A DNA stretch of 64,000 bases, taken from Mytilus edulis (lineage: Eukaryota). The position numbers and the translations under genes were made by a program. The stretch is from NCBI RefSeq assembly GCF_963676685.1, contig NC_092354.1, positions 64,790,001 to 64,854,000 on the forward strand, given 5' to 3'. Below, one piece after another: positions 1-64,000 of the stretch (positions are counted from its first letter, which is position 1; each line of letters begins with the position of its first letter). The notes under the pieces were generated by a model. It had not been told where the DNA came from and made no database searches. It saw nothing but the letters and a program-made list of their open reading frames with translations.

Positions 1-356
1 CGGTTTTCGTGTAAAACGAAAGTGGCCGCATTCGTGTTCATCCTTAATATTGAAATGTAAGTTGTATTTTATGATAAAACATAACATAAATAAAGGTTGA
101 GGATGAACACGGATGCGGCCACTTTCATTTTTACCAAAAACCATCTGAAAAGTGACATTTTTCGGTATATTAGGTAGATTTTTCATATTTGAGCTTGAAT
201 CGGATCGTTTTTAATGACTAAATCTGTTAAAATCTTTCACATAAACTAATTAATTCAAATACAATAGACACTTTAGTGTTTAAAAAGTGGTCAAAATCTT
301 TCGTCAGATGAACCTGAAATTTGAGGCCAAAATCGGTCCTTACCGGACCTACTCCT
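1..356. mobile_element. Right part of a non-autonomous TIR DNA transposon (same family as 45364-45946)
   Basis: Aligns by eye with 45588-45946 and ends in the same terminus TACCGGACCTACTCCT. Confidence 0.8.
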
Positions 357-5105: not shown

Positions 5106-6533
5106 ATATAAAATAAGTAGATGTGGTATGATTAAAAATGAAAACTATTCACCAAGTACGTAAGCAAGTACAGGCAACCGTACGGCCTTCAACAATGAGA
5201 AAAAAACTATACAGTGCGTACTAGTGTGGTCGGCTATAAAAGGCCCCGACATGCAAACATTGCAATGATTTAATTGAGGAAACTATCGGTCTTTTATATT
5301 TATAACAAAACAATGTACGAAAAACAAATAACAGACATGAAACAACGACAATTACCGAAAAACAGGCTCACGACTTGGAACATACGGTATGTTTGTAAGC
5401 GCTCAAATCTCCACTATATATGGACAGTGGAAGAACAAACTATAAAAATCATTTGAATAAGATTGAAATCATCAGAAGGATACTTGTAAGTGGTAATACT
5501 TCTAGCAAAAACACGGTGGACATGGATAGACATGTTTACCTTTTATTGAAAGCTTTCAATAACTTTTGTGAAGGCTTTATGTTTTTTTCACATCTTCTCC
5601 AGACTTTTATGAAAATTCTCTCATTGTATTTTACTAAATAATTGCCCATTTTGATGTTTTGGGAATGAAACGTTTTACGTAGATCCTTCCATATGATAAT
5701 TCATAGAAATTGTGACAGTTTTGTGTTACCTTTAATACATGTATCTATGTTGAAAGACGTGCATATGACAAATTGTTTATGTCTCTTCGAAAACCTGTAT
5801 GATCCCTGCTGTTTTTTTGTCAAAATTTTTGAAAATTGAGTACTCGGTGCAATTTGTGTACAGTGTCGTTAAGTAAACCTCATTCTTAAGCTTTGTAACG
5901 TGTTCGTTATGTTAGATTGAATGAGTTTCTATATGTTGTAATAAAATTATAGCTGTTCTATCAGGCAGCAACATAAAATATGTCTGGATTGAATATGGTT
6001 CACTCGATATAATTCAGCAATTAGCAAAGACCATACCTCATAGTTAGCTATTAAAGATTCCGAAAAGACAATGTAAAACAATTCAAACGAGAAATTTATT
6101 TTTTAACGCAATTTCAAAACGTCTTTTCGAGTTTACCTATTCAAAAAATTTTTTTTTTTTGTGTTTTTTTGTTGTTGTGTTATTGTTTATTTCCTGGGTT
6201 AAAACATATGTCTGGCTTATAGAGCCCATAGAAATAAATGTACTAAGGTATGTATTTATTTTGGCCGTTCACAGAAAATCTACCATACCTTTTGTTTGAC
6301 AATAATTGAATGTTATAAAAAGGGTGAGGTGGAATTACGATAGAACTGACCATGGCAATGAAAATATAAGAATTATTAACAACATCCGTATTTATTAAAT
6401 TATTGATATATATTAAGTTGATTAGAATCACATATTAAAATTTCGTATTCGATAACTATATTATTGAATTGGTTTTTCATATATGAAGTATTCCCTTTAT
6501 ACATTTAACGTCTGCTCAATGAGATAAGGTTGC

Positions 6534-8824: not shown

Positions 8825-10343
8825 TAATATTCTTAACAATATCGTACTGCACACTCGGGAAAAACTTTATCCAAACATGAAATGATTAAAACTGCAGGCA
8901 GTTGCATTATTAATGCAGGAAAAATTAGATAACATAACTTGAAAAGTGTTTTTTTTTTAGCAAGACTTACCTTAATCTTAAAGATCTACTAACTATGTTA
9001 ATAACAGCCAGTCTGTTTGTTTATTAAATTAAAGGTGTACAAAACATATTTGTAATTATATTCTGTCCTTTTGTCGTTAGTCAGCTCTTTTGTATGTTAC
9101 ATATTATTGTTTTTAAATTGAAAATTTTAATGAGAATCTAAAAAATCAAAGAACTCATTGCTTTCAAATTAAATATCTTAATAAGATTCAAATAAGCATC
9201 TGTATCAAACCGATATGTTATTTTTGAATATTTTATTAGTCATGTCATGTCGCTATTTGTACTACCTGCCATGTTTGTTTTGTTTGTAGTTAGAATTTGA
9301 AATCAATGAGTATAATTTTCGTCTTATTTTACTGTCTTTAGAACACTCTGTCAAAAGTCATTTTAAAGTCATCAATTTAGCGGAATATGTTACAAATCAT
9401 ATTTGAATGCTTGAAAGGGTGAAAACTATACTCCTGGGAACTTATTTTGTTTTGAAACGTTAGTATTCAAATAAAATCTTAATTTACCTATCTTATTCAG
9501 TTCAGCAATTTTATGTTTTTTAAATGTCAGTTTAATCAAAGAAATTGATACAAAGTTAAATTTTAGTAGTTCTACATTTTTGCACTTGTATTAGAAAAAC
9601 ATATAGTACGAAAATAATTAAGTAGTAAGAAAATTTATATATAGTATCAAAAAAAGATGTGGTATGATTGGCAATGAGAAAACACTTTGCAAGACCAATT
9701 GATACATAAATTAACAATTTAAGTTGATCGTAAGGCATTCAGCAATTAGTATAGCAAAGCTTACACGACATAGTCGGCTATAAAAGGCCCCGGATAAAAC
9801 GTAAAACAATTCAAACGAGAAAATAATGTACAAAATTAACGAAAACCAAATATGTAACACAGCAACAAACGACAACCTATGACGTAAAGGCTCTTCATAT
9901 TAAACATGCACATACATGTACATACATAATGTTATACAAAGCTACAAAAAATATTACAGTTTATCCCATTTTTTGATATTTTGAAAATTCACATATTGTA
10001 CATATTACAACGTTTGTGAATGGTGATTTCTTTTGTGAAGAAACATATTTATCAAATTGTTTACATTTTCATTTTTTTGATAATTCAACACCATAAACAA
10101 ATTGATCTATACTAATACATGTAATATTCTGCAGTAAAACAAAACTCTTTCACACGAAATTAACATAATTAATTCCCTTGATATGACTTTATTTAGTTTA
10201 TGGGTTTGTAAATGTGGTTATTTACTTTTATCAGTGAATTATACAATATATTGAGCTTCTTCTCGTTTTGTTACTTACATTGTGTTCAATTTACATGTTT
10301 CTGTATCATTATGTTAGAATAAATGTTAAATCATTTCACATTA

Positions 10344-10400
10344 TATGGTAATATATTTGCTGGTATCTAAATGTGTATTCGTAATGTATACATATATATA
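10344..10400 (+). promoter_or_regulatory. Candidate type-3 Pol III promoter (PSE-like element + TATA) of ncRNA copy 1
   Basis: TATGGTAATATA...TGG at about -80 to -60 and TATATATA at -31 to -24; equivalent elements at near-identical spacing precede all five copies. Confidence 0.65.
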
Positions 10401-10423
10401 CATATCGAAAGCATGATTCTATT

Positions 10424-10686
10424 GGAGATTGAAAGAACTGTGTCTACAGAGCGGTTTCTTGGATGTGTTGGTGTTTAACATACACTACGATACACGATCA
10501 TACACATGTGTACTGAGATTGAAAGGCGACAAGGCACTTTCATTATTAAGCAGAGACATACATGCGAATGTCTCCGATCAAAGGTACATTACAACTACAA
10601 GCAGATGTATGCTACAGTTATATGACAGCGAATGCATAAAGCTTTGCAAGGTCGTACTGAGACACGGTGATTTCAAATCTTCTTTT
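10424..10686 (+). ncRNA. Candidate Pol III panhandle ncRNA, copy 1 (~263 nt)
   Basis: 5' GGAGATTGAAAGAACTGTGTCT pairs with 3' AGACACGGTGATTTCAAATCTTC, followed by TTTT; TATA at 10393-10400; internal hairpins such as TGAAAG/CTTTCA and GAGACAT/ATGTCTC; no internal T4. Confidence 0.72.
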
Positions 10687-12819
10687 ATTTCTGTAAAAAA
10701 TAAACGTTATTAAATTTAAACTTATGTATATAGTTCTATACATTTCACGATGCAGTTATATGACATTCTTATACAATACTAGTTGATCCTTTATGTAGTT
10801 ACTGTTGTTTTGTATAATAAAGAGGCATTCGCTTCCAACTTATGCTCAAAGATATTTTAAAACTCTATTTCTCCGTCCAAACATGTTTCGAAACGATAGT
10901 TTATGTTATACACTACATGTACGTTAACGGATACTATTTCTGTTTACTTATTTTATATGTGAATTGTCATTGCGGAAATGAAAACACACATTACTATTTT
11001 CGATTGTAAGATGTTATAATAAGTACTACAACTGTTCTATATATGGATTGATACGTATCATTAGAGATGACAAGGATATTGTACAATGATTAACGAACTG
11101 ACGTATGCGTAATTTGACGAATTGTACAAAACGGGAGCTGCTGTTTTGTACAAAGAAATGAATAAATCTAACATGCATACGCTGGTTGAAGTTTAGTCAT
11201 TCGCATCACTTGCATGTAGTTTAAAGAAGATAGTATCTGTTTATAACTACTCACATAAATTATTCAATGTTTTCCACTACAGCGAATGATGCACTCGATA
11301 TCCGAGACTTTTCTTTTGAAAATATATGCATAATAAATAAAATAACAAAAATACCGAACTCCAAGGAAATTTCTAAACGAAAAATCAGCAGGCAAAGGAC
11401 AAAAAATCCAAAGCTCAAGCACATCAAACAAATGAATAACAACTGTTATATTCCTGACTGGTTACCGGATTTTTATAGTAAGAAAATGGTGGATTAAATC
11501 TGGTTTTATAACTAGCTATACCTCTCACTTATATAACAGCAATTTAAAAATCCATTTTATTGACATCGATGTATGAACAAAAACAAACAGACAGAAACAC
11601 CTAAATTTCTCTTAGTTAATCTGAAGAACAGTAGTTCTCGTTTGTTTATGTAATTTATACGTGTTTCTCGTTTCTCGTTTTTTATATAGATCAGACCGTT
11701 GGTTTTCCCGTTTGAATGCTTTACACTAGTAATTTTGGGACCCTTTATAGCTTGTTGTTCGGTGTGAGCCAAGGCTGCGTGTTGAAGGTCGTACTTTGAT
11801 CTTTAATGATTTGCTTTTATAAATTGTTATTTGGATGGAGAGATGTCTCATTGGGACTCGCACCACATCTTCCTATATCTATGATAGTTAAAAATATCAA
11901 AATTATAAGATTGATGATCAACACATATATAACTCAACAAAATTGTGAACACTTCAGAAATTAAGAATAATCTAAGATTTGTAATTATGATTAGTTCATT
12001 TTGTTTTAGGAGTAGGAAACACCTAAATTTCTCTGAGTTATTATGAGTTTCTACCTTGAGGAAGGCAAATAAATTCAAAGGACATGAAATTCGCAACCCC
12101 AACCATTCCCAATCATCGAAATGTCATAATGATCAATCATAGTATTTGCTTTTCGAGTATTTTGGAAAATCAATGCTATTGTAAATACATGTACATTTTG
12201 TATTCATTATTTTAGATTTTTTAAAAACAAACCATGTCTTACAGATTTTACTCAAACCTATGTAAGTAGTGGCGATACATAGACTAAGTGGTATACACAT
12301 AGAAAATTCAATATTCTAATACATTATGATGATTGAAAAAATAATTATAAAAAGGAAAAAAGGCGGGTCTACCCCATGTGTTTTTTTTTTTAAATGCTTG
12401 TTTTTTCTTCAAAATAGTAGAACGTCTTTATGCAAAACCAATTATGCATTTTGTCTAGTAAACTTCAATAACAAAATGATTTATTTACTCTTATGACCAC
12501 CAACATAGTTGCGAAGGTTAGAGGTTGACAGTTATGATAAAGAACTATTTGCAACATAAATCATTTCTTATTTGAAAAAAAAACACCTGTACATTTTCTT
12601 TTATTTTAATTTTAAACGGAGATATTTGTTTGTCTGAATCCTAAATACGTAAATGAAAACACAGAGCAAGCATACGATACGACAAGAATAAAGTTATAAA
12701 TTATTTAAGCATTCATAATTGATTGAACACATTCATCGATGCACTCAAATAGTGATGCACATTTCATTTTAAATCAATAATTGCCAACAACCATATTCTA
12801 TCGTAAAAAAAAGAAACAC

Positions 12820-13115
12820 GGCCCAGTAGTCAGCACTTCGGTGTTGACATGAATATCAATTATATGGTCGTATTATAAATTTTCTGTTTATAAAACTTTG
12901 AATTTTTCGAAAAACTAAGGTATTTTCTTACCCCAGGAGTAGATTATCTTAGCCGTATTTGGCACAACTTTTTGGAATTTTGGGTCCTCAATGCTCTTCA
13001 ACTTTGCATTTGTTTGGCTTTTTAACTATTTTGATCTGAGCGTTACTGATGAGTCTTATGTAGACGAAACGCGCGTCTGGCGTATAAAATTATAATCCTG
13101 GTACTTTTGATAACT
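12820..13115 (+). mobile_element. Retrozyme/Penelope-associated repeat carrying a hammerhead ribozyme
   Basis: ~300-bp unit containing the hammerhead core at 13040-13083; boundaries approximate. Confidence 0.65.
13040..13083 (+). ncRNA. Type I minimal hammerhead ribozyme
   Basis: GCGTTA-CTGATGA-GTCT(TATGT)AGAC-GAAAC-GCGC-GTC-TGGCGT: stem I GCGUUA/UGGCGU, intact CUGAUGA and GAAA cores, stem II, palindromic short stem III, GUC cleavage triplet ending at 13077. Confidence 0.85.
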
Positions 13116-15462
13116 ACTTGAAACTTTTTAAAAGTCTTATTTTATGCTCTCCACTCAGTTACACCCTTTAACACATTTATTGTTGTATAGATATCTATTG
13201 TTCTATTATTGTCCATGCCAATCAGGGAAATAAATACAATACAATACAGTTGTTACCTGAAAGAGAGGGAGCATCTCAAGGATTTCCCAAATTCAATATA
13301 CTTTTACACCTTCTGCAGAAACAGAAAATTAATGCCCATATAAATCCAAATGATATTTTGTCTTATTGAAACACAATATGCATTCAACTTTTATGGATGC
13401 CATGCCTTAAAAACTTTTAAACTGCACAAGTTAGTATGTACATAGTAGATTTTGAGGCGTTAATAAGCATTTGTTTTGATGAACCTACAATTCGTTCGTT
13501 AATATCGTGGTAATCTCTACTATCAGAAAGCTTTATTTGAAATGAACTGTATTGATTGACATGAACAATAGAGAAACTATACATACCTGACAATAATTGG
13601 TGATTTAAACAGTGTCATTTAGCGTAACATATATAGTGAAACTCAACTGAAAATTTAATCATCTTCTGCAGAACCAAAGTGCAGAGTAAAAACCCAAATA
13701 CTCCGGTGAACTACGTCTGTTTTGATCACTATTATCCGAGTAAAAATTTTGAATTTCTACAATGTACTGTCTTCGCTAATTATCTTATTAACGTGTTATT
13801 ATTGATCTTTGATTTCTTGTTGTAAATTGTTGCTTTTTTCCCGTTGTGTCCATTTGACGTGGCTCTGTACAGTCAGGATTCTAATCCGTCAAAATTATCT
13901 CCCCATTACGCCAGTTAATTTTCACAATTGTAGAAATTGAAGCCATTATAGGGATGACGCGCTGCCAATTTTTGTCTTCAAAACCGATAAATTTATCCAC
14001 ATAGCATCATACGATCCTTATATGTCAATTGTATTTTAAAAGATAAATGTATCTACTAGCTAATGAGCATCAGTTAATGATCATGTCTGCATTGATTCAA
14101 CTTATAACTATTGACTGATCGGTTGTCAGGTGGAATTTTCGAAAATTCTTAAACATTTAAAAAAAATTCTTTTAATTTATTAAATATTTCGTGGAAGGGC
14201 AGACTAGATATTTTCAGTGGCTGAAGATTACTAATTCTAGTTATCACACCAAAAATTATATTTTTTCGAAGATATGCATTTTATCTTATGTGATAAAAGT
14301 AAGAGGTTTAGCTAGTTATACAACCCTGTTCAATCCACAATTTTCTACATAAGAAAATACCGGAACCGAGTAAGGAATATGGCAGTTGTTTTCCCGTCCA
14401 TTTAAGGTTTTTTTTTTTTTTTATTTTGCCATTTGATGAGAGACTTTCCGTTTGGATTGTTTTCCGGAGTCCGCTAAAAATTGGACCACTAATAATATGT
14501 TAATGGAATCATTAAATAGCTGTGTTGCTATCATGAGTTCATTGTTCAAAGCATTGACATTCATGTGTTTATTTATTTATTCTATTAACTCAATATTCAG
14601 CCTAGGATAACATGGATAACACGAATTTGACCATCAATATTTCTGTAATCCTTTAGACTCACTTTCATCATTCGAACGACATGCATCGATTGTTATTAAG
14701 TAAATCCCTATCTTATTATTATTTTCACTTTCAAACCAATGGTTATATCATACGTGTTTCACATATTATTAATCAAATCTGTCATCTATCCATACATATC
14801 AATTCAATCGTATTTTGAATCCATAAAAACGTTAAAATCATATTTAGGCCTTTTAAACTTTTATATCCCTCTCCTGTGTCATTGTTAATGTCAATTTGTT
14901 ACAACAACCAAAATGTTCCATCCACTAATAAATTTCACTTGTATTAGAAATACCGATAGTACGAAGATAATTAATTGTTAATTAGCTACAATAAAATATA
15001 ACAGTGTATCCCTATATTACTTAATATTTGGACTCTGTTTGTAAAGATCAAATTGTATATATATATATAACAAGAAATGTTATAAAGATTTGTTTTACAT
15101 AAAATGTATAATATTTAAACAAAAATCAGTAAATCAACACCATTAAATAACTTTTATGTGCTAACATTCAGTAGCAAAAGAACTCTTACAAAATAAATTA
15201 ACAGAATTATATCCCTTGATGTGATCTAATTTAGTATATGGGTTTGTAAATATAGTTCTTTACTTTTATCAGTGAATTATACAATATAATTAGCTTCTTC
15301 TCGTTTCGTTTCTTATACATTGTTTAATTCACACGTTTCTCTATTATCATATTAGGATAGATGTAAAATCTGTATACATTATATGGTAATATATATCCTG
15401 GTTTCTATTTTTGTATTCGTAATGTATATCTATAAATACCTTTTCCAACGATAGTTTCAAAT

Positions 15463-15701
15463 GGAGATTGAAAGAACCGTGTCTGTAGGTTGGTTACTTA
15501 GATGTTTTGGTGTTGAACCAATGTTATATACACCATGATACACAAAGTGTACTTAACAAGAAAGGGTTGACCTATGATGCAACTTTCTTACGTACATTGC
15601 AGCTTTGCGGTTGTGCAGCCGTATGAAACAGTTTAAAAAAGAGCGAATACCCAAAAAAATCGCTTGTTCAACTGAGACACGGTGGTTTCAGATCTTCTTT
15701 T
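15463..15701 (+). ncRNA. Candidate Pol III panhandle ncRNA, copy 2 (~239 nt)
   Basis: GGAGATTGAAAGAACCGTGTCT ... AGACACGGTGGTTTCAGATCTTC then T8; TATAAATA at 15431-15438; upstream TATGGTAATATA; internal hairpins AAGAAAGGGTTG/CAACTTTCTT and AGCGA/TCGCT; one internal T4. Confidence 0.72.
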
Positions 15702-16087
15702 TTTTATTTTCTCGAAAAATAAACGTTATATAATTTTAACTAATTTATAGTTCTATACATATGATACATATACCCATATAGTTTTTATAAAATTCTTATG
15801 CACGACTAGTTGATCCTTCATGATGGTAATATTGTTTTATATAATAAAAAGGCATTCGCATCCAACTTATGCCCACCCATTTTGTTTCAAACTTTATTTC
15901 TCCGTCCATACATGTTTCGACACAATAATATCTTCAATATATTACACTACGTTGACAGATATAATTTCTGTTTACTTATGTTTTATTTGTATGTCATTGC
16001 GGAAACACACTACTGTTTTCGATTGTGAGATGTAATAAGTACTACAACTGTTCTAGATATGGATTTATATGTATCAATAGAGATATA

Positions 16088-16209
16088 CAGAATAATAGGT
16101 AGTTTCGTTTTTGATTCTGACTATATAATGTGGAATATCTAGACGAGGGCGAGTTAAGATATTCCACATGATATAGTCAGTATCAAAAATGAAACTACCT
16201 ATTATTCTG
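16088..16209. mobile_element. Palindromic fold-back element inserted in the 3' flank of ncRNA copy 2
   Basis: ~50-bp near-perfect arms CAGAATAATAGGTAGTTTC...GAAACTACCTATTATTCTG; absent from the homologous flank of copy 1 (~11060). Confidence 0.8.
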
Positions 16210-18300
16210 TTTCTCGGTAATTATGACGTCACACAATGTATTGCCTAATATTTTCAGTGATACAGCCAGTACGTTGATACTCGAAAATATTAGGCAGTAA
16301 GAGCAAAGGAAAAATATACGAAGTACCGATTAAACAAGGATATTGTGCGATGACGAGCGAACTAAATAAAGCGTAATTATACGAATTGTACGAAACGGGA
16401 GCCGCTGTTTTGAACATAGTAATGAATAAATCAGACATAAAAACGTTGATTGCTTCTATACATATAATTTCCGTTTACTTATTTTTTTATATGTATGTCA
16501 TTGCGGAAACACGTATTACTATTTTCGATTGTGAGATGTAATAAGTACTACAAGTGTTCTAGATTTAGATTAATATGTACAATTAGAGATGACAAAGATA
16601 TTGACTGGTTCTAACCTGTTCGGTGTGAGCCAAGGCTCCGTGTTGAAGACCGTACCTTGACCTTTAATGGTTTACTTTTGTGAACTGTGATTTGGATGGA
16701 GAGTTGTCTCATTGGCAATCTTCCTATATCTATCTACTGACAATAATTTGTGGTCTAAACTGTGTCATTAAGCGGAACATATCAAATAAAACTTAACTGT
16801 TTGATAATTTAATCATCTTTTGCAGAGCCGAAAAAAAGTACAGAGCAAAATCCCAAATGCTCCTGGGTACTACGTTTGTTATGAGTACTAGTACATGAGT
16901 AAAATCTTAGGTCACCTACAATGTATCTAATTAAGCTGCGCAATTTTAAATGTATGTTTAATCAAAGATATTACAACAAAGACAAATTTATTTTATGAAG
17001 TCATTTAGTTCTGTGTTGACAACACGAGTTTATTGTTATTTGTCAAGTAAAGTAAAGCATTTACATTTATGCATTTATTTATTTATTTTATTTTACTAAT
17101 TATTATGCCGAAGATAACATGGATTTGAGTTTCAATATTTTCTGTAGACTCTTGTCTATCATTCGAACGACATGCATCGATTGTAATTAAGTTTATCCCT
17201 ATTTCGTTTGTATGTTCGTATGTTCGTTTCTATAATATCTCTTAAGCCAGACTAGACTGAGTGGTCCGTAAGATTTGCAAGCGCTGCTGGACACAATATG
17301 ATCATGTAAAAGGAGAAGGTTCACGAAGGGTTAAAATTGGCCCTAAATTTTTTATGTTTTTTAAATCGGGCCAAAAAACTACAATTTCACATAGAAATAC
17401 TTGTGATAATATTAATAAGACAAAAATATATTTTCATGGCACCTTCCTTTAAAATTTATGGAGCTATGACCCCTTAATTAAATATTATTTGTATATTAGG
17501 TCAATTTTAGTAATTTTTTTCCATAACTTTAATTGTTTTTTTGGCATAATTAAACTTGGCCGCCATCCACGATCCAAAAAGTATTTATATTGATGAATTC
17601 TATATCAAAAATGGAATTTTTTGGTTACAAAACATTTTGGATCATAGGTGGCGGCCAAGGTTTTTCCTACAGCTTTTAGGTCTGAAAATTGCACAAAATC
17701 ATCATATTTTGACAAAATGTTCAAAATGGGCATACTTTGGAGAATAGTATGTACTTTTATGAAAACAACTGATTTATTAAGCATTAACGATGAAGGCTTT
17801 TGAAATAGACCCATTTACAAACCAAATAGTGACCTTTTTGGTTTTATGAAAAAGTTGATATTTTAGATAATTTTTGTCATGAGTGACCATTGTCCTTTAC
17901 TTATTTCGCTTTTATCCTTTCAAATTTGTATTCCTTACAGTTAGAAATCTTCCAAATTAACTATTTATATTATTGAATGGTGTCACTCAATTTATATTTA
18001 GCTAGAAAAAAATATTACAGTTTATCCCGATATTTCCTAATATTTGGACTCTGTAAAATTCATATTGTATATACAACAAAAAATGTCTTTTTGCGAAGAA
18101 ATTAATTTTTTCAATAACTAACACCATAAATAAACTGATATATGCTAACATTCAGTTGTAAAAAAAACTCTTACAAAACAAATTAACAGAATTATCTCCC
18201 CATATGTGATTTAAGTTAGTATATGGGTTTGTAACTGTAGTTATTTTCTTTTATCAGTGAATTATACAATATATTGAGCTTCTTCTCGTTTTGTTGCTTA

Positions 18301-18655
18301 CACAGTATGCATTTCATGCATTTCTACACAGTATGCATTTCATGCATTTCTACGCAGTATGCATTTCATGCATTTCTACACAGTATGCATTTCATGCATT
18401 TCTACACAGTATGCATTTCATGCATTTCTACACAGTATGCATTTCATGCATTTCTACACCGTATGCATTTCATGCATTTCTACACCGTATGCATTTCATG
18501 AATTTCTACACCGTATGCATTTCATGCATTTCTACACCGTATGCATTTCATGCATTTCTACACAGTATGCATTTCATGCATTTCTACACGGTATGCATTT
18601 TATGCATTTCTACACAGTATGCATTTCATGCATTTCTACACAGTATGCATTTCAC
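18301..18655. repeat. 26-bp minisatellite, ~13-14 copies
   Basis: Unit CACAGTATGCATTTCATGCATTTCTA. Confidence 0.95.
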
Positions 18656-18781
18656 ACTATTATCATGATAGAATAACTGAAAAATCGTCAAAGTTACGTT
18701 GTATGGTAATATAACTCTAGATTTCTATATTTGTATTCGTAATGTATACCTATATATACATCTCCAACAGTTGAAAGAATC

Positions 18782-18984
18782 GGAGATTGAAAGAACTGTG
18801 TCTAAGCATATAAGCAGGTCTTTGCAGAACGTTGCTCTTAACAAGATAACTGGCGGGACGAATGTAAAAATATGACTATTTGATAAAAATGATTGATACG
18901 CAAATGCGACTGTTTTAAGTAGCGTCGGCATGCAGTGATCGCGCATTCATAAACTGATACACGGTGATATCAGATCTTCTTTTT
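18782..18984 (+). ncRNA. Candidate Pol III panhandle ncRNA, copy 3 (~203 nt)
   Basis: GGAGATTGAAAGAACTGTGTCT ... ATACACGGTGATATCAGATCTTC then T5; TATATATA at 18751-18758; upstream TATGGTAATATA; one internal T4. Confidence 0.68.
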
Positions 18985-20359
18985 CTTCGAATAATAAACG
19001 TAATTACAATAAATGTACAGTTCTTGATATAACACCATTTACTTTTTAGAAGTTCTACAAAAATTAATTTGCTATACTAAATGTTATAACTCATGTTTGT
19101 ATATTAAGACAAATAAAGTCCTATCGATTTAAGATCTTGATCTTTAAACTTAATAAGCTTGCACGTTCTGAAATTTTTAGTCATATTAGAATCTCACAGT
19201 CTTTAGATCTTCTCATGCCCATGTCAGACCTATCAAACGTTTGTTATTGGAGTGAATTAAAATCCTACATGTGTGTATCAAGTAATTTCTTAATTTTTTT
19301 GTATACATCTATATATTTATCCTTTTTTTATTATTATTGGAGACTCATGGTTGTAATAACAATTATAGCAGTTTTATTTCTTAATATCTAAGATACATTC
19401 AGTGCCAAATTAATGTCCCTCAAATTTTATTGCACTCTCTTAACTTCACCGGCGAAACATGTTTCGACTCTACAGTATCTTTATATTGTAATGTGAATCA
19501 TAAACCGATAAAACATATGTTTAACTATTTGTATGATAATGGCTATAAATTAAATACATAATGTTCATTACTGTTTTAGATTGTGAGATAAAATATTCTA
19601 CCACGTTTTCGATTAATGGATAAGTATAAACGCACGGTAACAATATTGATTGATGAGCACAAAAAGGTTACATTCGTGTCCTCATAAAGCTTTAATAAAA
19701 ATATAATGCAGTTACCTCAACACTAGGAACTATATTCGTGTACAACGAAAATCGATAATTGTGGTCTCGGACATCTTATATGGATTGTTTTTCTTTTGAA
19801 AGTATCATAATTGGAAAAAGTAAAACCCCAATTAGCAACAACGCACAGTAACTATCAATTTAATCACATCGTCGTCTCTCTTTTAAGTACATTATTAACT
19901 TTAACAGGAAAAACAATGACCTAACAAATGTAATCATTTTATGCCTTGAAGGCAATTTCCTTGAAACCTCAGTTTCGTTCGAGTTGATTCTTCAAAAGAA
20001 AAACATATCGTTCTGAGTGAAAAAATAAGCGTATAGATATATAAGATTAAAAGAAAATAGAATTCTGACAAATGTTTTCGATGTTTTTGATAGATTCTAG
20101 TCGTCTGATTTGTAATTTTACTGATTGTGTCCTGATTTCGACTGTTGACATTCGTCGTACATGTAGTTTGGAATTGCATAGCTATTGATGCATTCATAGC
20201 ACGATACGCTTTTAACATGTAGATGCACTCGTTTTCGATCCAGATAACGTTTGTTTACTTGATTTGAATTTCTTTATATACCAGATTTGATCACCAGTAA
20301 ACTAGTGTTCTCTGAATCCCCCTACAATTGAGACAATGATAATGTATTCATGAAATCAT

Positions 20360-20531
20360 NNNNNNNNNNNNNNNNNNNNNNNNNNNNNNNNNNNNNNNNN
20401 NNNNNNNNNNNNNNNNNNNNNNNNNNNNNNNNNNNNNNNNNNNNNNNNNNNNNNNNNNNNNNNNNNNNNNNNNNNNNNNNNNNNNNNNNNNNNNNNNNNN
20501 NNNNNNNNNNNNNNNNNNNNNNNNNNNNNNN
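20360..20531. other. Assembly gap (172 N)
   Basis: Run of n characters. Confidence 1.
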
Positions 20532-22328
20532 AAAGAGGCGGAAGAAGAAGAAGCTACAGAGCTCATGTTTACGTTGTTGAATCATACATTTCATGTTCGA
20601 CCGTATATTTTCTGACTTATGCAAATAGAGTTAATATAGTTGATCATAGTTATACAAGCAAATATAGTTATACAAGCAAAGCTGAGTTGATATTTAAAAA
20701 AAAGACCTTAACATATGATCTGTTAGTCTGTATAGGTTTCAGATAGCTCACTAAAGCTCGTGGACAGGACAATTAGTTTACCAACAAGTCAACTTAGAGC
20801 AAATAAGGGAATTATGTGCACTTTTAACACAATTATCAAATTACTTTATAAACTCACGAAGCAGCAGACAGAGCATGGTACACAATATCCTCTTTACTTT
20901 GAAGTGCGATAATGTTATTGTATATATACATGTAGTGTTTTAATATTTTGATTGTATCATCATCTAACACGGATATGTAAACATTGAGGATACCTTTGTA
21001 TTTTACTATCACATTTATTTTACATGTCAGCACGAACTATGGGCTTCCCCACGTCTATTTTTAGAAACAAAACAAATATGCGGTATTTAAGTTACTGTTA
21101 AGGACTTTTACAAACAAACACGCATATTATCCAGATGGGAGACTCAATGAATTTTAAATTTATTTCAAATACTCTAGATCTATTTCCTTCTATTAAAAGG
21201 AACATTTAGCATTCTTATCTATATACAGAGCTGAATCTTTTTAATTCTAGTCGGAATTAATCAACTATGCATCTATATACACCCATTACTTAAAGTAATA
21301 CCATGGAATTTTACTCTAGCACCTAGTTCTTTTAGGTCACTAAATATATTCGACGTAAAACCATTCAAGTTTGAACTTTCCAAAAAGCGGCACATACTGC
21401 TTAGCTGTATCCGAATTTTAAGTACTAATTGGAATGCATGTGATTGCCGATTTAGTACAGGAAGTGTGGAACTTTCTATATATATTGATTGATATAATTT
21501 TTTTTTTAATTGTACGTTATACTAACTATTCTGGTACCCGGCACCATAAAGATATTCTCCATCATGAGCTATAAATAACTGCATGTACAGGTATCAATGA
21601 ATCATTCACTCAATTAATCAAACCAGTAGTTATATTCATATCACACAATAAAATCAGCCATCCAGTCATATCAATTCATTAGTTCGTTGAAATTATTAGA
21701 AACTTAATTCAATATTAACGCCTTTTACACTTGATTCATGTATCTTTTATTGTTACTTTATATTTCCCTTTGCATTTGTTTGCCAGTAAAAAAGGTTTTC
21801 CCAACACGATTCAACTAATTGTTTTCAAAATACCTATAATAAGAAGATAATTTATCAGCAAAAAAAGATTTTAATAAAAATACGTTACAGTTTAAAACAC
21901 AATTTCCAAATATTTAGAATCTGTTTGTAAAATTCATATTGTATAAGAAAAAATATATGTGACTTGAGATTGCTTTTGTGAATGAAAAATATATATCAAA
22001 TTGATTAAACTTTCAATTTTTCAATAACTCATCACCACAGGTAAACAAACTCTTTATAAAAAGTTAACAGAATTACTTCCCCTGAAATGCATTAATTTTG
22101 ACTATTGGTTTTTCATCGGAGTAATCTACTTAAATCAATGGATTATTCGATTCATTGAGCTCCTTCTCGTTTTGTTGCTTAAACAGTGCACAAGTTACAC
22201 GTTTATTTTTTATCAGGATAGTATAAATGTAAATTCGATATATAATATATGGTAATATACTCCCTGGCTTTCAATATTTCTATTCGTTATGTATACCTAT
22301 ATATACGGTTCCAACGCTGAAATTAAGT

Positions 22329-22513
22329 GGAGATCGAAGGAACTGTGGCTAAAAAGTTCACCGATTATTAAGGTTGTTGATATGGTCATGAACATGTTGC
22401 AACATGCGGTAACATCTCAGGTAATGTGCAATCTGAGTGTATAGTTATTGCGGGCATAGGCTATTGCACTATTGCTTGAATAATCAGCCACGGTAATTTC
22501 AAATCTTCTTTTT
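22329..22513 (+). ncRNA. Candidate Pol III panhandle ncRNA, copy 4 (~185 nt)
   Basis: GGAGATCGAAGGAACTGTGGCT ... AGCCACGGTAATTTCAAATCTTC then T5; compensatory U-A to G-C change; TATATATA at 22298-22305; second stem GATTATTAAG/CTTGAATAATC enclosing three hairpins; no internal T4. Confidence 0.75.
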
Positions 22514-22933
22514 CATCAGAGAATGTTATATTAACAAATATAAAGTCATCATGTGTCATGGCCACGGGAAATTAGATTCCCATGATACAAGAAGATAGGA
22601 GAAAAACAAATTGTAAATCAAGACGAAGTTCTTTAATATGTTTTTATCTAAACCATTTTTACTGTTTATCTGCATTTACCGCTTATGAAACGATTTTCAG
22701 ATTTATAGTGGTTTAAGTTTTTATGCCAACCAGTAGCAAACAATGCCATTTTTTCTGTTATACTACAAAACATTACACTTGGTACCAAAAGTATTTCCGG
22801 ATATCGTCTTGTAGTATTTTGTAATGTAGAGGTGTTATAAATATAAAGTAAATAATAACAAAAATGATATGATGTCCATATTAATGCGTTACCGGCTACC
22901 AAATTGACGAAGTTAACCCTCCAAATTAATTTA

Positions 22934-23380
22934 TCAAATAAGTCTGATCAAGTTGGTATAAGGGCGTCCGTAAATTTCACGAAGGGATGATTTCAACTTC
23001 ACCATTTGGAACTCTTGGTTTAAAAGCGTCCTTGTAAGCAGCAACCCTCTATCAAGAAAATCATGATAGGAAATACAAGCACGGGAACCTAGTATCAATT
23101 GGGAGGTATATATCTCGTATGCAGGTGCTGCTGGAATGGTGCTACTTAGAAATGGAAAGTTCACAATTGGAAAGCTGAAGTTATCTCTTTTGTCGTAAAG
23201 AATAGTTTTCAACCGACCTTCATGGTCAATTTCTAGATGTAAGTCAAGATATGATGCCGACTTAACTGTATCTGTTGTATTTATCTCTAGTTCCATGGGA
23301 TAGATGCGTTCAACATAGTCACCAAATTTAGAATTATTTAGTGAGAGAAAATCATCTTTTTAGCAGAAAGTAAAGTTAAT
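22934..23380 (-). mobile_element. Degenerate reverse-transcriptase fragment, Penelope-like retroelement
   Basis: TTDTVKSASYLDLHLEID..GRLKTILYDKRDNFSFPIVNFPFLSS.IPAAPAY resembles the RT thumb/C-terminal region of Penelope-like elements; truncated. Confidence 0.75.
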
Positions 23381-23539
23381 GGATATTGCAATAAACGCTG
23401 AAAAACAATGAAAAAATATATGTAAGACATGATCAACATATAAGTCAAATTGCTGGAATTGCCGGTTGACTCCGTGTAGGAGCTACCGCCATTAAATGAC
23501 GTTTTTTTTCTTTTCTTTTTTTCAATAACTTAAAAATAT

Positions 23540-24515
23540 AAAAAAGAAGATGTGGTATGATTGCCAATGAGACAACTATCCACAAAAGACCAAAATGACA
23601 CAGACATTAACAACTATAGGTCACCGTACGGTTTCAACCATGAGCAAAGCCCATACCGCATAGTCAGCTATAAAAGGCCCCGATAAGACAAAGTAAAACA
23701 ATTCAAACGAGAAAACTAACGGCCTTATTTATGTAAAAAAATGAACGAAAAACAAATGTGTAACACATAAACAAACGAAAACCACTGAATATACAGGCTC
23801 CTGACTTGGGACAGGCACATACATAAATAATGTGGCGGGGTTAAACATGTTAGCGGGATCCCAACCCCCTCTAACCTGGGACAGTGGTATAACAGTACAA
23901 CATAAGAACGAACTATAAAAATCAGTTGAAAAAGGTTTAACTCATCAGATGGACAAAAATATAAGTGGACGTGGCCTGGTACTTATACATCCCGACACAA
24001 AAAGACACAATGAACAGATCTAAGAGTACTCGCAGTTATCTGACAGCTAATTCAAAGCCACTAACAACTAATAAAAAATCATGCATCTAAGACTAAACTA
24101 TCAATCCGTACACATCCAACATCCAATGGATTTAGTGTAAAGACATCATGAACAGCCAGAGAACAACATGACCTTGTGCAATGCCAAGTTACAGGTATCG
24201 ACAGATTGTAGATCCATGAATATGTATATATATAACATACTAGTAAAATTTAGTTAGCTTTTAATCTGCTGATAACAAAATCAATATTTATTCCAATAAA
24301 AACAATATTCAATGATCTTATTACGGTGTTGAATAGGCAACCTTTTAGAATAAGTTTTTTTAAAGGAGCGACAAGTTTACATGGATCATTTCTAAATTTC
24401 CGGGCACGGTTAACAACATTTCCGTAAAAATGAGGTTGTTCTATCCCGTTTGAAATAAGTTTTCTACAGGTACATCCAAACTTCAAAACCAAATCTTTAT
24501 ATCTATGGAAAAAGT
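23540..24515 (-). mobile_element. 5'-truncated retroelement: C-terminal ORF fragment (24250-24510) plus downstream non-coding region equal to the abundant dispersed repeat
   Basis: ORF end KLISNGIEQPHFYGNVVNRARKF..LKKLILKG..IRSL is contiguous with the longest copy of the dispersed repeat. Confidence 0.6.
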
Positions 24516-24983
24516 TTATTTTTGTATAGTTACAAGCCTCTAAATAATATATTGTTTTGACAAAATTCTAGAAATGTTTTCGTCAATATGAATTAGTGAT
24601 ACTCGAGTACTCGCTCGGCAAAACATCTATAAAATGGTGACACAAAAGTAAACCCATTTTAAGTATTGTATGCTGTTTTCTTATTGACTGAAAACCCTCA
24701 ACATTTTTTATTAGGAGTAAAGTATAGTCCAAGGCGACGACTTTATGCAGAAAGCCGAATTTCTATTGAGTGGTCCCGCAGTTCATGTCGCTGCAATCTG
24801 AATTTTTTTTTTCAATACCGATTGCGGGAAGACGTTAATTCAGTAGTATTATGTTTGTTAAGATTGTAATTAGATAACGGATTCTAATTTCAAAAGTCTA
24901 TGTACAATTGTTTCACAGTAAAACGAAGTCATTCATTTTGTAAACATTTTTTTTTTACGAAAACAACGCAACAAAACAAACAC

Positions 24984-25494
24984 CATCTTCGCTAGCCAAG
25001 GGTTACGATCCACTTCCCTCCTCTCCACCCTTGGCAGATTAAGCCAACATTTGTGATAACAACTGTTGCGCCATCTATTGGTAAATTAAAGTCACGCACA
25101 TTCCGAATATATTATTCTTGACCAATGGTAGCACCTGAACTCTTCAATTTGGAAGTAAAAACACGGTAGCGTCTAAATTCTACACGCTTTGTAAAGCAAG
25201 AAACGAAATTGTACGTTGAAATTCATGCATTTATGCAAGAAACATACATATAAACTTTAACTAGTCGATTATAAACATTCAAATTCTCACTAAATATAGT
25301 CGTATGTTTAGGGATGTAAAGACTTAATAATAAGCACGTGGCAATTGTTTACATACACTTTCTATATTTATACGTGATCATGTTATAGGCGCTTTTTGAT
25401 TGGATACAGCGAGTTTCGACTGTAACCAATGAAAATCATTACCTTGAGTCTCCGAACTTCTATCTCAATCCGCCAAGGGTGGATAGCGAAGATG
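24984..25494. mobile_element. MITE-like element (~510 bp)
   Basis: Inverted termini CATCTTCGCTAGCCA ... TGGATAGCGAAGATG. Confidence 0.65.
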
Positions 25495-25845
25495 CAGAAA
25501 ATCTTAAATGCAACAAAAACAAACAACAATGCAACACATATAGGAACGAACTACAAAATAAATACTGCCATACTCTTCACCTGGTACAGGACATTTCACG
25601 AAAAAATTGTCGGCTGAACCTAGTTTAGTAGCTAGCAGAGTCTTGCGCTTTATGACAATGTTAAATATACCGCTAAATGACAACATGACATTGCAGGATT
25701 ACAGTACATATAAATGCAAGAACACTCAGAGCAGAGAAATACATAAATATATAATATAATTGTATATCATAAGCCAATGAGGAATTTAAGATATCTTGTG
25801 TACAAAAATGTGTATCGATTTAATTTCTTTCAACTTTTTAGTTAA

Positions 25846-26245
25846 GGATGTACTTAAGTGAGGTTAGGTTAAAATTAAGAAATTAAGAAATTAAAATTGA
25901 TACTATAAGCTGGTAGAGCATCAATCAAAGATAAAGATAAGCTAAAAATATTGATAGGTAATGGACCTTTTTTTTGAGATATTTGAAATTTAAATATGGC
26001 GGGAAAAGGCTGACTCGGACTTTTACCTTATAATTGCATTGGTAATATTTAGGTCTCAAAACAAAAGAAAGAAAATCAAGAATATTTTAAAACTTTGGTA
26101 AATGACCTTTCATGAGCTATTAGGTCTTATATGAACAAAATAAATGAGTGTTATGGGGCTAAATATTTTACATTGTATTGTATGGAAAAACACCAAGGAG
26201 TCCGAACATTTGACACAAATTCCAAAACCTCGCATAAGTACATCC
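25846..26245. mobile_element. MITE with TTAA target-site duplication (Kolobok-like)
   Basis: TTAA|GGATGTACTTA ... TAAGTACATCC|TTAA. Confidence 0.85.
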
Positions 26246-26970
26246 TTAAGTCAAAATCATAAATAAAAGATTATAATTATAAAAGTCAACGCACGATTGT
26301 TTTATAGTTAAACTAAATCATTCAAGTATAGAAACATGAGCATTGTGTTCATTTTGAAGTGTCATATGACGTTATGGGAACTAAGATTACAAAATATATA
26401 TTACTAGATAGCATTTTATAATGTTTAATAGCATATATAGGATAACTGACATCTGTTGGGAAAAACCTTAATAATGTTAAAAAAAATGGTGGCTGAGTTT
26501 GTTATAGCAACTCTATTATCAAAAGAATGTATCTACAACTATGCTATTGGTGTTGCTTTAGGACATTCAATTGCATATCCCGTCATGATGAGGAAATTGT
26601 TATTTCGTATGTACAAAACGTATCGAATAAGTATCATTTAACTGTTTAGTTAGTTCAATATCATATAAATACTTCATATGTTATTTGAATTGTAAACAAA
26701 AGAATAAAATAATTGGTTATCGCCCTTAATGAGTTTTAACTTAATTTAATTTCTTGTTAGACGAAACGTTTACTTTTATAACTAAATGGTATGATAAAGG
26801 TTGATTCTTGTCTTTCTTAAAACTTGTTTACAATCGTACATTGTTGTGATCTTTTAGTTAAGATAAAATATTTGAAAGATCTTCTCCGTAGTATGGTAAT
26901 ATAATGCCATGGCTTGTTGATTTCATTTATAGTATACACCTATATATAGTTTTCAAAATAAACTACTTGT

Positions 26971-27269
26971 GGAGATTTAAATCAACATGTCTATGGTCTC
27001 TTACATGTTATACAAGTATACTGGTGTGTCCGCGATAATAAGTATCCAAGTCTTTGTTTCGAGATTGGGTCTGATTCTGAGATGAGTCAAATGTGGTTTA
27101 AAAGTATGACATATAGATCATGAGGCGCAATGCCACCCTCCTGTGGGTCGATATGTTAAATACATAAAGCAATTATCGTGATCCAGTACTGTTAATGTTG
27201 ATTTTAAACGGTGCATCTAGCGGGAGGACTGAATGTTACCGAGACCTGTTGATTTCACATCTTCGTTTT
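26971..27269 (+). ncRNA. Candidate Pol III panhandle ncRNA, copy 5 (~299 nt, most divergent)
   Basis: GGAGATTTAAATCAACATGTCT ... AGACCTGTTGATTTCACATCTTC then GTTTT; AAAUCAACA/UGUUGAUUU is fully paired despite sequence change; TATATATA at 26941-26948; upstream TATGGTAATATA; internal stems TACTGG/CCAGTA and CGCGATAAT/ATTATCGTG. Confidence 0.68.
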
Positions 27270-28145
27270 GTCGAAAGTAACATACTTTCAACTCTCATGG
27301 TCAGTTCTACACGCAATATTATTTCAATTTAACTAATATGCAATGATTATGCTGTTTATATTTAAAGCAATAAACTCTTTAAGTCGCCGTGTATACATAG
27401 TACATTATGAAGTGTGAAACTGTTGTATTTATGATAAGTTTATATGAATTGGTGAATAACAATGTCCTTATTTTTCTAAATATATTTTCACAAATTTGAT
27501 AGATATAACAGAAAAACTTTTGCAAAATTTGCATCCTGTTTTCGGGCATTTTATTTAGCATTTAAGCTTTCGTATGGTAACAAATACGTGACAGAATTGC
27601 CAGTCTAACAATGAAGCTGTAATACTGAGGACTCCAGGGATATACAAAAATTATCTGCGTCATAGATTAAGGTCAAATTCATGTAAGAGATTATTTTACT
27701 ACAAGTAAAAATCATTAAATGATATGACCAAAGGAAACCAATTAAAGATACCAGGCTTTGACCAAAAACCAAATACGGTTTTATCGACATTTCCAATATA
27801 CTGGTGGTGTTAAGGTAACATTTAATTCACCCAGGTAACAATACAGAGAAACTGTGGTGGTGCTATATGAATGCTTAAACAAAAAACATGATATCTTTTA
27901 AATCTACATGAACTATCCCATAGAGGTCGAATTAGTCACTAGCAAGTAAATAACGATGTTTCTTAGCTGATTTTGACAAAATTGAACTAAACTGGATGCT
28001 GCAAGTGAATTGTCATTTCAATTTTTCACTTTCATTAATGATTAAACATAACAAAAATCATTTTTGTCATATATCTTATAACTAGTAATTTTACCAATAA
28101 AGACATATTATCAATGCAACGTCACTAATTAATATAAAGATTTAA

Positions 28146-28819: not shown

Positions 28820-29959
28820 TTAATATTCATCCTATTTTGTTTGTTTGTTTAGTTCAATTATTGTTGTCATTATAATGAAATTTAAAGCGACTCTCGTGCA
28901 TGTGAGAGATAAAGCTAACTTTAACCCCAGGTTTTATTCACCATTTTCTACTTAAGGAAATGACTTTACCAAGTCAGGAATATGAAATTTGGTATACATT
29001 GTATATGTTAAAACTCTGATCGACGTCCGGCCTCTAATCGACGTCCGTTTCTCAAATCGACTGCTAAATCTGACGATACATTCGCAAATCGACGTCTTAT
29101 ATTTTGATACCTTTATCGCTATCCAATATGACGGCATGTATTGACAAAACTACGTATGATTGATTGTAGTCCTCTCTAATCGATGTACAATGTCTATGAA
29201 TAATAAATTCCTGGACTTATTTGTTAAAATGTACATGTTTTGTAGGGTTTAAACATTTATACCTACTTTCCATATAGATTTTTTCAACCCGAAATAAGTA
29301 TCATGCCATGCATATTAAAGTTTATCTTGATAAAAAGTTAATCGAATCGATCTACATAGTAGTGTGTCATTCCTATTCATGTTAATAAATGACATGCATG
29401 TAAGTGTATGTCAAGAGAAAGCAACCTAACGACTAATAACACCAAACGAAATCTATAGGACAATATGTTATCTTCAACAATAGAAAAAATAATTAAGTAC
29501 AGCCAATGGTTTTTTTTTTGTATTATAATTCGATAAGATACTTTACAACAAATTTCAGATTTTTAAACCTGGAGTGAAACATATACGCAAGAAATTGGCA
29601 TTTTTTATGTTGTGCTGTTACACAACTGTTCTAGGTTGTATGCTCATACACACATTTAACCCAGATATATTCTTTATGGGCCTGTAGTACAGTAGTTTTC
29701 TGTCTGTCATTTTTGTCTTTCGAATTTTTTTTTTATAAATAAGACCGTTAATTTTCTTATTTGAAATGTTTGCATCATTCGTGTCATAACACATCTCCTT
29801 ATTTTTATGCAATCTCTGAAATTAAAAAAAAAATGATATCACTACCTGTTTACATATTTAGTTTAGTATATTGTAAGTCTTTAAAAAAAAACTTTATTTT
29901 TAAATAGATCCTATTTGTCACCGATAATATGTTTAAAGGTCTAAAAGACAACTGTTTTA

Positions 29960-63000: not shown

Positions 63001-63800
63001 TTCAGATATCGTCCATCGTTTTTCTTCAGATATCATATCACGTTTGTCTTCAGATATCGTCTCACGTTTGTCTTCAGATATCGTCTCACGTTTCTCGTCA
63101 GATATCGTCCCAAGTTTGTCTTCAGATATCATATCACGTTTGTCTTCAGATATCGTCTCACGTTTGTCTTCAGATAACGTCCCACAATTGTCTTCAGATA
63201 TCGTCACTCGTTTTGTCTTCAGATATCGTCTCACGTTTGTCTCAAGATATCGCCTCTTATTTGTATTCAGATATTATCTCACTTTTGTCGTCAGATATCG
63301 TATCACGTTGGTCTTCAGATATGGTATCACGTTTGTCTTCAGATATCGTCTGACGTTTGTCGTCAGATATCGTCTGACGTTTGTCGTCAGATATCGTTAC
63401 TAGCTTTGTCCTCAGATATCGCCTGACGTTTGTCTTCAGATATCGTATCACGTTTGTCTTCAGATATCGTCTCACGTTTGTATTCATATATCGTATCACG
63501 TTTGTATTCAGATATCGTAACTCGCTTTGTGTTCAGATATCGTCTCACGTTTGTCTTCGGATATCGTAACTCACTTTTGTATTCAGATATCGTCTCATGT
63601 TTGTCTTCAGATATCGTCTCACATTTGTCTTCAGATATCGTCTCACGTTTGTCTTCAGATATCGTCACTCGCTTTGTCTTCAGATATCGTTACTCGCTTT
63701 GTCTTCAGATATCGTTACTCGCTTTGTCTTCAGATATCGTTACTCGCTTTGTCTTCAGATATCGTTTCACGTTTGTCTTCAGATATCGTCACTCGCTGTG
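60060..63800. repeat. 24/25-bp satellite array (~3.7 kb) with higher-order structure
   Basis: Units CAGATATCGTCTCACGTTTGTCTT (24 bp) and CAGATATCGTAACTCGCTTTGTCTT (25 bp); degenerate edges. Confidence 0.95.
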
Positions 63801-64000
63801 TTTTTAGATTTTGTCTCACATTTGACTTCATATATCTTTACACTGTCTTCGGATACATTAGTACATTTTGTTGCGAGATGAAAATATCAACCAGTTTACT
63901 TTGGTGGTTAGAGATATCTTTATTCGTTACATTTGTGGAAATATGTTTAGATATCTTTATCTTACATTTTTTTATTTTTTTAGATATGATTATTAACCTG

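Follow-up and report, generated by a model that had tools for sequence, protein, structure and literature searches.

Y RNAs and stem-bulge RNAs (RF00019; PMC4726728) and vault RNAs (RF00006) all follow the same plan, in which a terminal handle is combined with a variable module. Y and stem-bulge RNAs, 70-140 nucleotides (nt) long, are products of clustered paralogous genes of type 3 for RNA polymerase III (Pol III), and their paired ends form a conserved bulged stem, accompanied by a poorly conserved loop and a 3' oligo-U tail. Y RNAs are further recognized by a Ro60 site in the lower stem (a 7-bp helix with a single bulged C and an opposite 3-nt bulge), by the A/GUG-CAC/U motif in the upper stem and by a conserved UUAUC in the loop beside the latter (PMC4726728). 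Vault RNAs are likewise transcribed by Pol III from clustered paralogues; their termini are paired and conserved, and their centre varies. Such stem-closed Pol III RNAs are still poorly charted beyond vertebrates, nematodes and a few insects. We describe here an array of five genes (c1 to c5) from the mollusc Mytilus edulis that display the same plan, yet fall outside each of these classes, most of whose defining features they lack. They lie in a window of 64,000 nt (NC_092354.1, positions 64,790,001-64,854,000, forward strand), to which all positions below refer unless a contig is named.

The five paralogues were delineated by BLAST comparison of the c4 and c5 units with the window and by direct reading. 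All are located on the + strand, 3.3-5 kb apart, and each starts with GGAGAT and ends with ATCTTC, immediately followed by a T-run (Table 1). The stretch 22329-27269, considered in a first-pass annotation made from the sequence alone, extends from the start of c4 through the end of c5. Copies c1 and c2 could be aligned over 974 nt with 73.5% identity. We consider it probable that these five paralogues form a tandem family of small non-coding RNA genes, which Pol III transcribes from external U6-type (type 3) promoters into RNAs closed by a 22-bp rod. Gene anatomy, promoter geometry, pairing statistics and uniqueness in the genome, on which this proposal is built, were all observed directly. 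On this view, it is a lineage-specific, as yet unnamed family of stem-closed Pol III RNAs with a structurally constrained rod, related to Y and vault RNAs; nothing of this kind was found in Rfam 15 or in the literature searched.

Promoter elements were conserved throughout the array. A 12-nt box, TATGGTAATATA, starting at about -80, was identical at 12/12 positions in all five copies, within a flank that was 64-79% identical between copies (about 65% for c5). Downstream of it, TATA(T/A)ATA began 30-32 nt upstream of GGAGAT in every copy. The promoter of the U6 array of the same genome, taken as type 3 reference, displayed TATGCAAATATC at -79 and TATATATA at -30, and the box and the TATA box started 49 nt apart in U6, c1 and c3. 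Likewise, 7SK and U6atac genes of this genome displayed related (T)TTGCAAA-type boxes together with a TATA box. U6, U6atac and 7SK genes thus resemble the array in their promoter, with an ATGCAAAT-like box at about -80 and TATA at about -30, and in their T-run terminator, whereas their RNA products are unrelated to those of c1 to c5. A further conserved block, situated still more upstream and detected by alignment and BLAST between units, may be a distal enhancer. Because the box, the TATA spacing, the T-run right after the 3' arm and the U6-like geometry all occur in the same direction, the anatomy is that of Pol III type 3 genes on the + strand, and the reading as + strand RNA is well supported. 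The first-pass annotation had favoured function as plus-strand RNA, which agrees with the location of box, TATA and T-run on that strand in 5/5 copies. Pol III transcription itself and the exact RNA ends are predicted from these signals.

The reference U6 genes form a tandem array of their own, comprising at least 48 copies of identical score at a period of 733 bp; at its edge, one unit departs from U6 past position ~67.

Alignment of the five copies showed that the terminal helix consists of a 22-nt 5' arm paired with a 23-nt 3' arm. Its basal part, GGAGAU/AUCUUC (6 bp, with a G.U pair at position 2), was invariant in 5/5 copies, as had been reported in the first-pass annotation. It is followed by a single bulged nucleotide in the 3' arm (A, G, G, A and C in c1 to c5, respectively), by the 5-bp UGAAA/UUUCA helix, by a 2x2 GA/GA purine loop and by a 9-bp upper stem, ACUGUGUCU/AGACACGGU. 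In c5, U-A and C-G pairs stand in for the GA/GA internal loop. When examined by eye, the rod appeared to be prolonged by 2-3 bp past a further bulged base in four copies (among them CAG/CUG in c1, UAG/CUG in c2 and UGG/CCG in c5), which contributes one further A-U to G-C exchange. The minimum free energy fold of c1 was closed by the terminal helix (full-length folding z-score of -4.6), and RNAalifold, applied to the whole five-copy alignment, returned exactly this helix and no other consensus pair.

Pairing was maintained across the copies to a degree exceeding chance. The cells of the 22-pair helix were paired in 88% of cases, versus 31-51% when the partner strand was slid by 1-3 columns. Double-sided changes were found in three pairs, namely 20-281 (U-A to G-C in c4) and 15-286 and 17-284 (both in c5), the U16.G pair was replaced by C-G in c2, and two pairs were altered via wobble; the observed covariation was matched in just 3/500 column shuffles. 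For each copy, random substitutions in the observed number were also simulated on a c1-like ancestor, P being the probability that no fewer pairs than observed are retained. This probability was 7e-4 for c5, which retains 20/22 pairs despite 10 substitutions (6 + 4), 0.09 for c4, 0.08 for c2 and 0.67 for c3. Covariation is therefore beyond chance, yet it is carried largely by one copy, c5. For c5, selection for pairing is the best interpretation; c4 and c2 are consistent with it, but it is not proven.

The arm sequences on which the first-pass annotation had built its case for selection on RNA structure were exact for c1 (ACTGTGTCT/AGACACGGT), c2 (ACCGTGTCT/AGACACGGT) and c4 (ACTGTGGCT/AGCCACGGT). 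Those of c5 (AAATCAACATGTCT/AGACCTGTTGATTT), which it described as rewritten in both arms and still paired, do pair at 13/14 positions, with one U.C mismatch left. The changes that it listed for c1, c2, c4 and c5 are real, but c3 and the mismatches of c4 (C7.A) and c5 (U8.C and U18.C) had gone unmentioned. Its conclusion of structural selection is hence supported in part, by the c5 simulation and the column shuffles, but falls short of proof, given five paralogues with no orthologues, two uncompensated mismatches in c3 and zero depth of c4 and c5 in RNA runs. It had also taken the retained G-U wobble as a sign of plus-strand RNA. The number of pairs was indeed higher on the + strand in every copy (20/20/18/19/20 in c1 to c5, versus 18/19/16/17/19 for a minus-strand RNA), but this G.U belongs to a helix that never varies. 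Since the basal helix is invariant, it is silent for or against structure, and its G.U could equally reflect sequence constraint in the initiation region, in the terminator context or through protein contact.

Conservation was clearly partitioned along the genes. Mean pairwise identity reached 0.85 in the 5' arm (shuffled 0.45) and 0.83 in the 3' arm (shuffled 0.39), and was 0.72 from -90 to -1 (shuffled 0.53) and 0.68 from -180 to -91 (shuffled 0.52), versus 0.60 in the interiors (shuffled 0.59). The latter vary in length from 135 to 249 nt, and their alignment survives only between c1 and c2, at 0.67, which is below their flanks (0.70-0.82). Interior folding energies were not unusual (dinucleotide-shuffle z of -1.2, -0.1, +1.1, -2.5 and -0.5 for c1 to c5), and no 7-mer or 8-mer was common to three or more interiors. 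Given that interiors are at shuffled identity, fold ordinarily and have no common words, we conclude that selection acts on the promoter and the rod. The z-scores did not support the possibility that each interior is a multi-hairpin domain under selection, which was dropped. Interiors behave as unconstrained or faster. Highly transcribed Pol III genes undergo transcription-associated mutation, which would account for interiors that diverge faster than their flanks without positive selection. A system of constant handle and variable module, in which interiors outpace the surrounding DNA through diversifying selection, appears doubtful to us; should interiors diversify in this way, candidate roles would be those of decoys or partners in virus or transposon conflict, or of matched partners for TROVE/Ro60-like proteins.

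In the mechanism that we propose, Pol III would initiate on GGAGAU, or a few bases away from it, and stop in the T-run after AUCUUC. The ends of the resulting RNA (180-294 nt) would then zip into the bulged ~22-bp rod, followed by a 3' oligo-U tail. This rod would be the selected part, held by sequence conservation and, where altered, by wobble and compensatory changes, and it may serve as a handle that protects the ends, stabilises the RNA and offers a binding platform. Putative partners are La on the U-tail and a protein binding the helix, the bulge or the GA loop; such binding, like any function of these RNAs, is suggested by analogy with known stem-closed RNAs. The interior would be a free module, essentially unconstrained in sequence and with no detectable conserved fold. 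If expressed, the five genes extend the RNA repertoire of a mollusc by a lineage-specific class of longer panhandle RNAs, provide a clean natural example of modular evolution (promoter and helical handle fixed, interior free) and are obvious candidate partners for the Ro60-like proteins of this genome. Their practical value depends on the demonstration of expression and of a partner protein, and is modest before that.

No further member of the family was found outside this array in the genome (1.37 Gb, 14 chromosome-sized contigs). No other match was obtained for c1, c4 and c5, and their interiors were accordingly rejected as antisense guides or as repeat-derived sequences. A search with a sequence-only profile of promoter and 5' arm retrieved only the five copies among the 150 of ~845,000 first-look candidates that were scored, a depth at which weak members could escape; its weak hits matched no Rfam family. 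Pattern searches of the genome (box-TATA, and the 22-mer with up to 3 mismatches) gave extra hits at chance level only, devoid of promoter, partner arm or terminator, and a promoter-start pattern run against metagenomes gave three AT-rich chance matches and no orthologue. As each gene is unique and no further members were found, c1 to c5 do not constitute a repeat family.

One of the extra hits (contig C9, minus strand) displayed the TATGGTAATATA box and a TATA box, with GGAGAT following 28 nt downstream. Beyond these elements its sequence becomes repeat-like, and neither a partner arm nor an ATCTTC-T-run occurs within 1.5 kb; it represents either a chance match or a destroyed sixth copy.

Evidence for expression was restricted to c1 and is suggestive. 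A search of public runs showed fractions of 0.85 and 0.74 of the sampled c1 31-mers in two small random-primed metatranscriptome contig sets, and 0.59-0.70 of c1 words in three small runs of uncertain kind; the RNA runs holding c1 were labelled invertebrate gut metagenomes. One c1-holding contig set (X1; 47 million contig letters) and three raw-read RNA runs were mapped on positions 22100-27500, where only a repeat-like stretch (22824-26262) was covered, on both strands. Since flank depth was zero in X1, this set is not broadly contaminated by genomic DNA at the locus, and the c1 signal is more likely RNA.

The repeat at 23540-24100 was very heavily represented on both strands in all four RNA runs, with word depth up to ~11,000 in X1, and further members of it occur elsewhere in the window (Table 1). 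As many of the repeat reads continue into unlike sequence, it is a dispersed, transcribed element resembling a short interspersed element (SINE) or a miniature inverted-repeat transposable element (MITE).

Table 1. Location of the five genes, their regulatory blocks and other features discussed in the text (window positions, except where a contig is given).
Feature	Positions	Strand	Description
Gene c1	10424-10686	+	~259 nt predicted RNA plus U-tail; 5' arm 10424-10445; 3' arm 10660-10682; TTTT (T4) 10683-10686
Gene c2	15463-15701	+	~235 nt predicted RNA; 5' arm 15463-15484; 3' arm 15675-15697; then T8
Gene c3	18782-18984	+	~198 nt predicted RNA; 5' arm 18782-18803; 3' arm 18957-18979; then T5
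Gene c4	22329-22513	+	~180 nt predicted RNA; 5' arm 22329-22350; 3' arm 22486-22508; then T5
Gene c5	26971-27269	+	~294 nt predicted RNA; 5' arm 26971-26992; 3' arm 27242-27264; then GTTTT; most diverged copy
Core promoter of c4	22248-22305	+	TATGGTAATATA at ~-81 to -70; TATATATA at ~-32 to -25
Core promoter of c1	10344-10400	+	same box and TATA units
Core promoter of c2	15382-15438	+	same box and TATA units
Core promoter of c3	18702-18758	+	same box and TATA units
Core promoter of c5	26892-26948	+	same box and TATA units
Upstream conserved block of c4	22134-22180	+	~-195 to -150; ..ATCA.TG.ATTAT...TTGAGCT.CTTCTCGTTTTGTT; possible distal enhancer
Upstream conserved block of c1	~10229-10275
Upstream conserved block of c3	~18253-18298		displaced by minisatellite
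Minisatellite	18299-18654		26-bp unit, 13.7 copies, 96% matches
Type I hammerhead ribozyme motif	13040-13083	+	core CUGAUGAG...GAAAC intact
Transcribed repeat	23540-24100
Further members of this repeat	6012-6094; 9645-9917; 11629-11872; 16642-16731; 29712-29771
Satellite	60300-63836		24-bp unit (TTTGTCTTCAGATATCGTCTCACG), ~146 copies, 81% matches
Open reading frame, 773 aa	35042-37363	-	no Pfam family
Open reading frame, 497 aa	43463-44956	-	no Pfam family
Open reading frame, 419 aa	6534-7793	-	no Pfam family
U6 tandem array	C10:45057210-45092312
Extra pattern hit	C9:56522022-56522076	-	box, TATA and GGAGAT
TROVE open reading frames (examples)	C7:12277720-12278460; C7:27023522-27024376; C7:31810008-31810766		intronless
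TROVE gene	C4:70588251-70593813		multi-exon

Several observations weigh against a family of five functional, structurally constrained genes. The case for selection is drawn from five paralogues with no orthologues, and ten pairs, including the entire basal helix, are invariant and bring no evidence of covariation. Copy c3 displays two uncompensated mismatches (C21.U and A10.A) that weaken the helix, and no folding excess (full-length z = -0.3). At the level of expression, sister runs of the same studies contained none of c1's words, and zero depth was recorded for c4, c5 and all unique flanks in the four RNA runs, X1 included, so that the copies with compensatory changes are precisely those at zero depth in these samples; the RNA is neither ubiquitous nor abundant in ordinary libraries. 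Avoidance of internal terminators was also less marked than it first appears. Gene bodies contained 3 runs of T4 or longer versus 16.7 expected at the window rate, and 0 of T5 or longer versus 6 expected, but the T content of the genes is 29.5% versus 36%, their own composition predicts only ~6 T4+ runs (hand calculation), and the depletion is largely gone when judged on that basis.

Part of these observations would be accounted for if only c1, and perhaps c2, works, c3 to c5 being decaying duplicates whose pairing is partly fortuitous or inherited from a recently functional state; in that case, little could be learned about present selection from the compensatory pattern. The zero depth of c4 and c5 in runs where X1 contains c1, the broken pairs and ordinary folding of c3, the pairing test of c4 taken alone (P = 0.09) and the terminator of c5, the weakest of the family (GTTTT), all point in this direction. 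Against it, c5 has kept its pairs through 10 substitutions, and the 12-nt box and TATA remain intact in 5/5 copies despite diverged neighbouring bases. Moreover, three of the four runs were ordinary transcriptome libraries, which may miss non-polyadenylated Pol III RNAs, and the sampled individuals may lack c4 and c5. On balance, decay of c3 to c5 seems to us unlikely. The anatomy of the copies (imperfect inverted termini of ~22 bp and a short variable interior of 135-250 bp) is also reminiscent of MITE-type elements, and the termini could be a DNA-level feature without any RNA function, either as MITE-like terminal inverted repeats or as an inverted repeat that template-switch errors in replication have generated and maintained. 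Template switching can make paired changes in one step, which counts for such an origin. Yet, unlike MITEs, the five copies are each unique in the genome, occur in one array and one orientation, and display no target-site duplications in their flanks. Conservation extends ~200-450 bp upstream past the termini, a U6-type promoter stands exactly before the 5' arm, and G.U positions are kept (in 5/5 and 3/5 copies) that would be mismatches in DNA or in a minus-strand RNA. We thus regard a DNA-level origin as very improbable, and a family of Pol III RNA genes as the preferred reading.

Within that preferred reading, c1 to c5 might be highly diverged orthologues of Y or stem-bulge RNAs, their rod being bound by Ro60-like TROVE proteins. 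Besides the type 3 clustered paralogues, the paired ends, the conserved stem and the variable loop that they have in common (PMC4726728), GUG/CAC occurs in the upper helix of c1 to c4, a trinucleotide that carries little information; c5 displays AUG/CCU with a U.C mismatch instead. Canonical Y RNA was not found in the genome with the Rfam Y_RNA model, 51 candidates being scored, yet genes of the TROVE (Ro60/TEP1) type are present and expanded, with at least 8 intronless open reading frames (ORFs) of ~490-585 amino acids (aa) on contig C7 and one multi-exon gene on contig C4. TROVE is also the domain of TEP1, a vault component, and the small number of Y_RNA candidates scored likewise tempers this argument. 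Against such orthology, the Y_RNA model matched no copy at thresholds as permissive as E = 10, and the RNAs (180-294 nt) exceed Y RNAs in length by a factor of 2-3, with a far larger and branched interior. The Ro60 site is missing, since the 5' strand has no bulged C and no 3-nt bulge lies opposite, the rod showing instead a one-base 3'-strand bulge and the symmetric 2x2 GA/GA loop; UUAUC is absent from c1 to c4, and its single occurrence in c5 (position 203) is distant from the stem. Orthology with Y RNAs is accordingly improbable in our opinion, and a Y-like role of c1 to c5, based on analogy, is a reasonable lead and nothing more. The rod could finally be a Drosha-independent Dicer substrate, that is, an open-ended helix of ~22 bp, its ends set by Pol III initiation and termination and its 3' end overhanging, which would be cut to a conserved small-RNA duplex, the interior being a disposable giant loop. 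The conserved 22 nt (5') and 23 nt (3') with a 3' U overhang, and the end of conservation at the helix end, would fit this idea. No miRNA family matched at the arms, animal Dicer would be poorly suited to a 5' triphosphate and to a 135-250-nt loop, and the conserved GA/GA loop and bulge suit a protein-binding rod better, which makes processing by Dicer highly unlikely, even more so than a DNA-level origin.

Other known RNA classes were compared as well. Rfam returned no match on any copy, either in the gathering-score scan of the window or at E up to 10 over positions 10000-27600, and identities as Y RNA, vault RNA, 7SK, RNase P/MRP or miRNA were rejected at the model level by these scans. Telomerase RNA was discarded too, as no CCCTAA template permutation was present in any copy. 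Unlike vault RNAs, c1 to c5 display no internal box A/box B and no match to the model. Vault RNA genes do occur in this genome, with ten candidates above cut-off (103-122 nt, with box A/B) on other contigs, as do 7SK (two loci on contig C9) and U6atac (three loci elsewhere).

Some minor features of the window deserve mention. A 26-bp minisatellite lies between the upstream block and the core promoter of c3 and moves this block ~360 bp farther off; two pairs of the stem are also broken in this copy. Between c1 and c2, a type I hammerhead ribozyme motif was detected with a score of 30.2 bits (E 5e-4), slightly below the Rfam gathering score of 34, and is probably a piece of an interspersed repeat or of a retrozyme-like element. 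Three long ORFs had no Pfam family; the ESM Atlas contains those of 773 and 419 aa letter for letter and otherwise only sub-threshold look-alikes (0.84-0.85). Near the end of the window, a 24-bp satellite is the source of the string of overlapping ORFs observed there.

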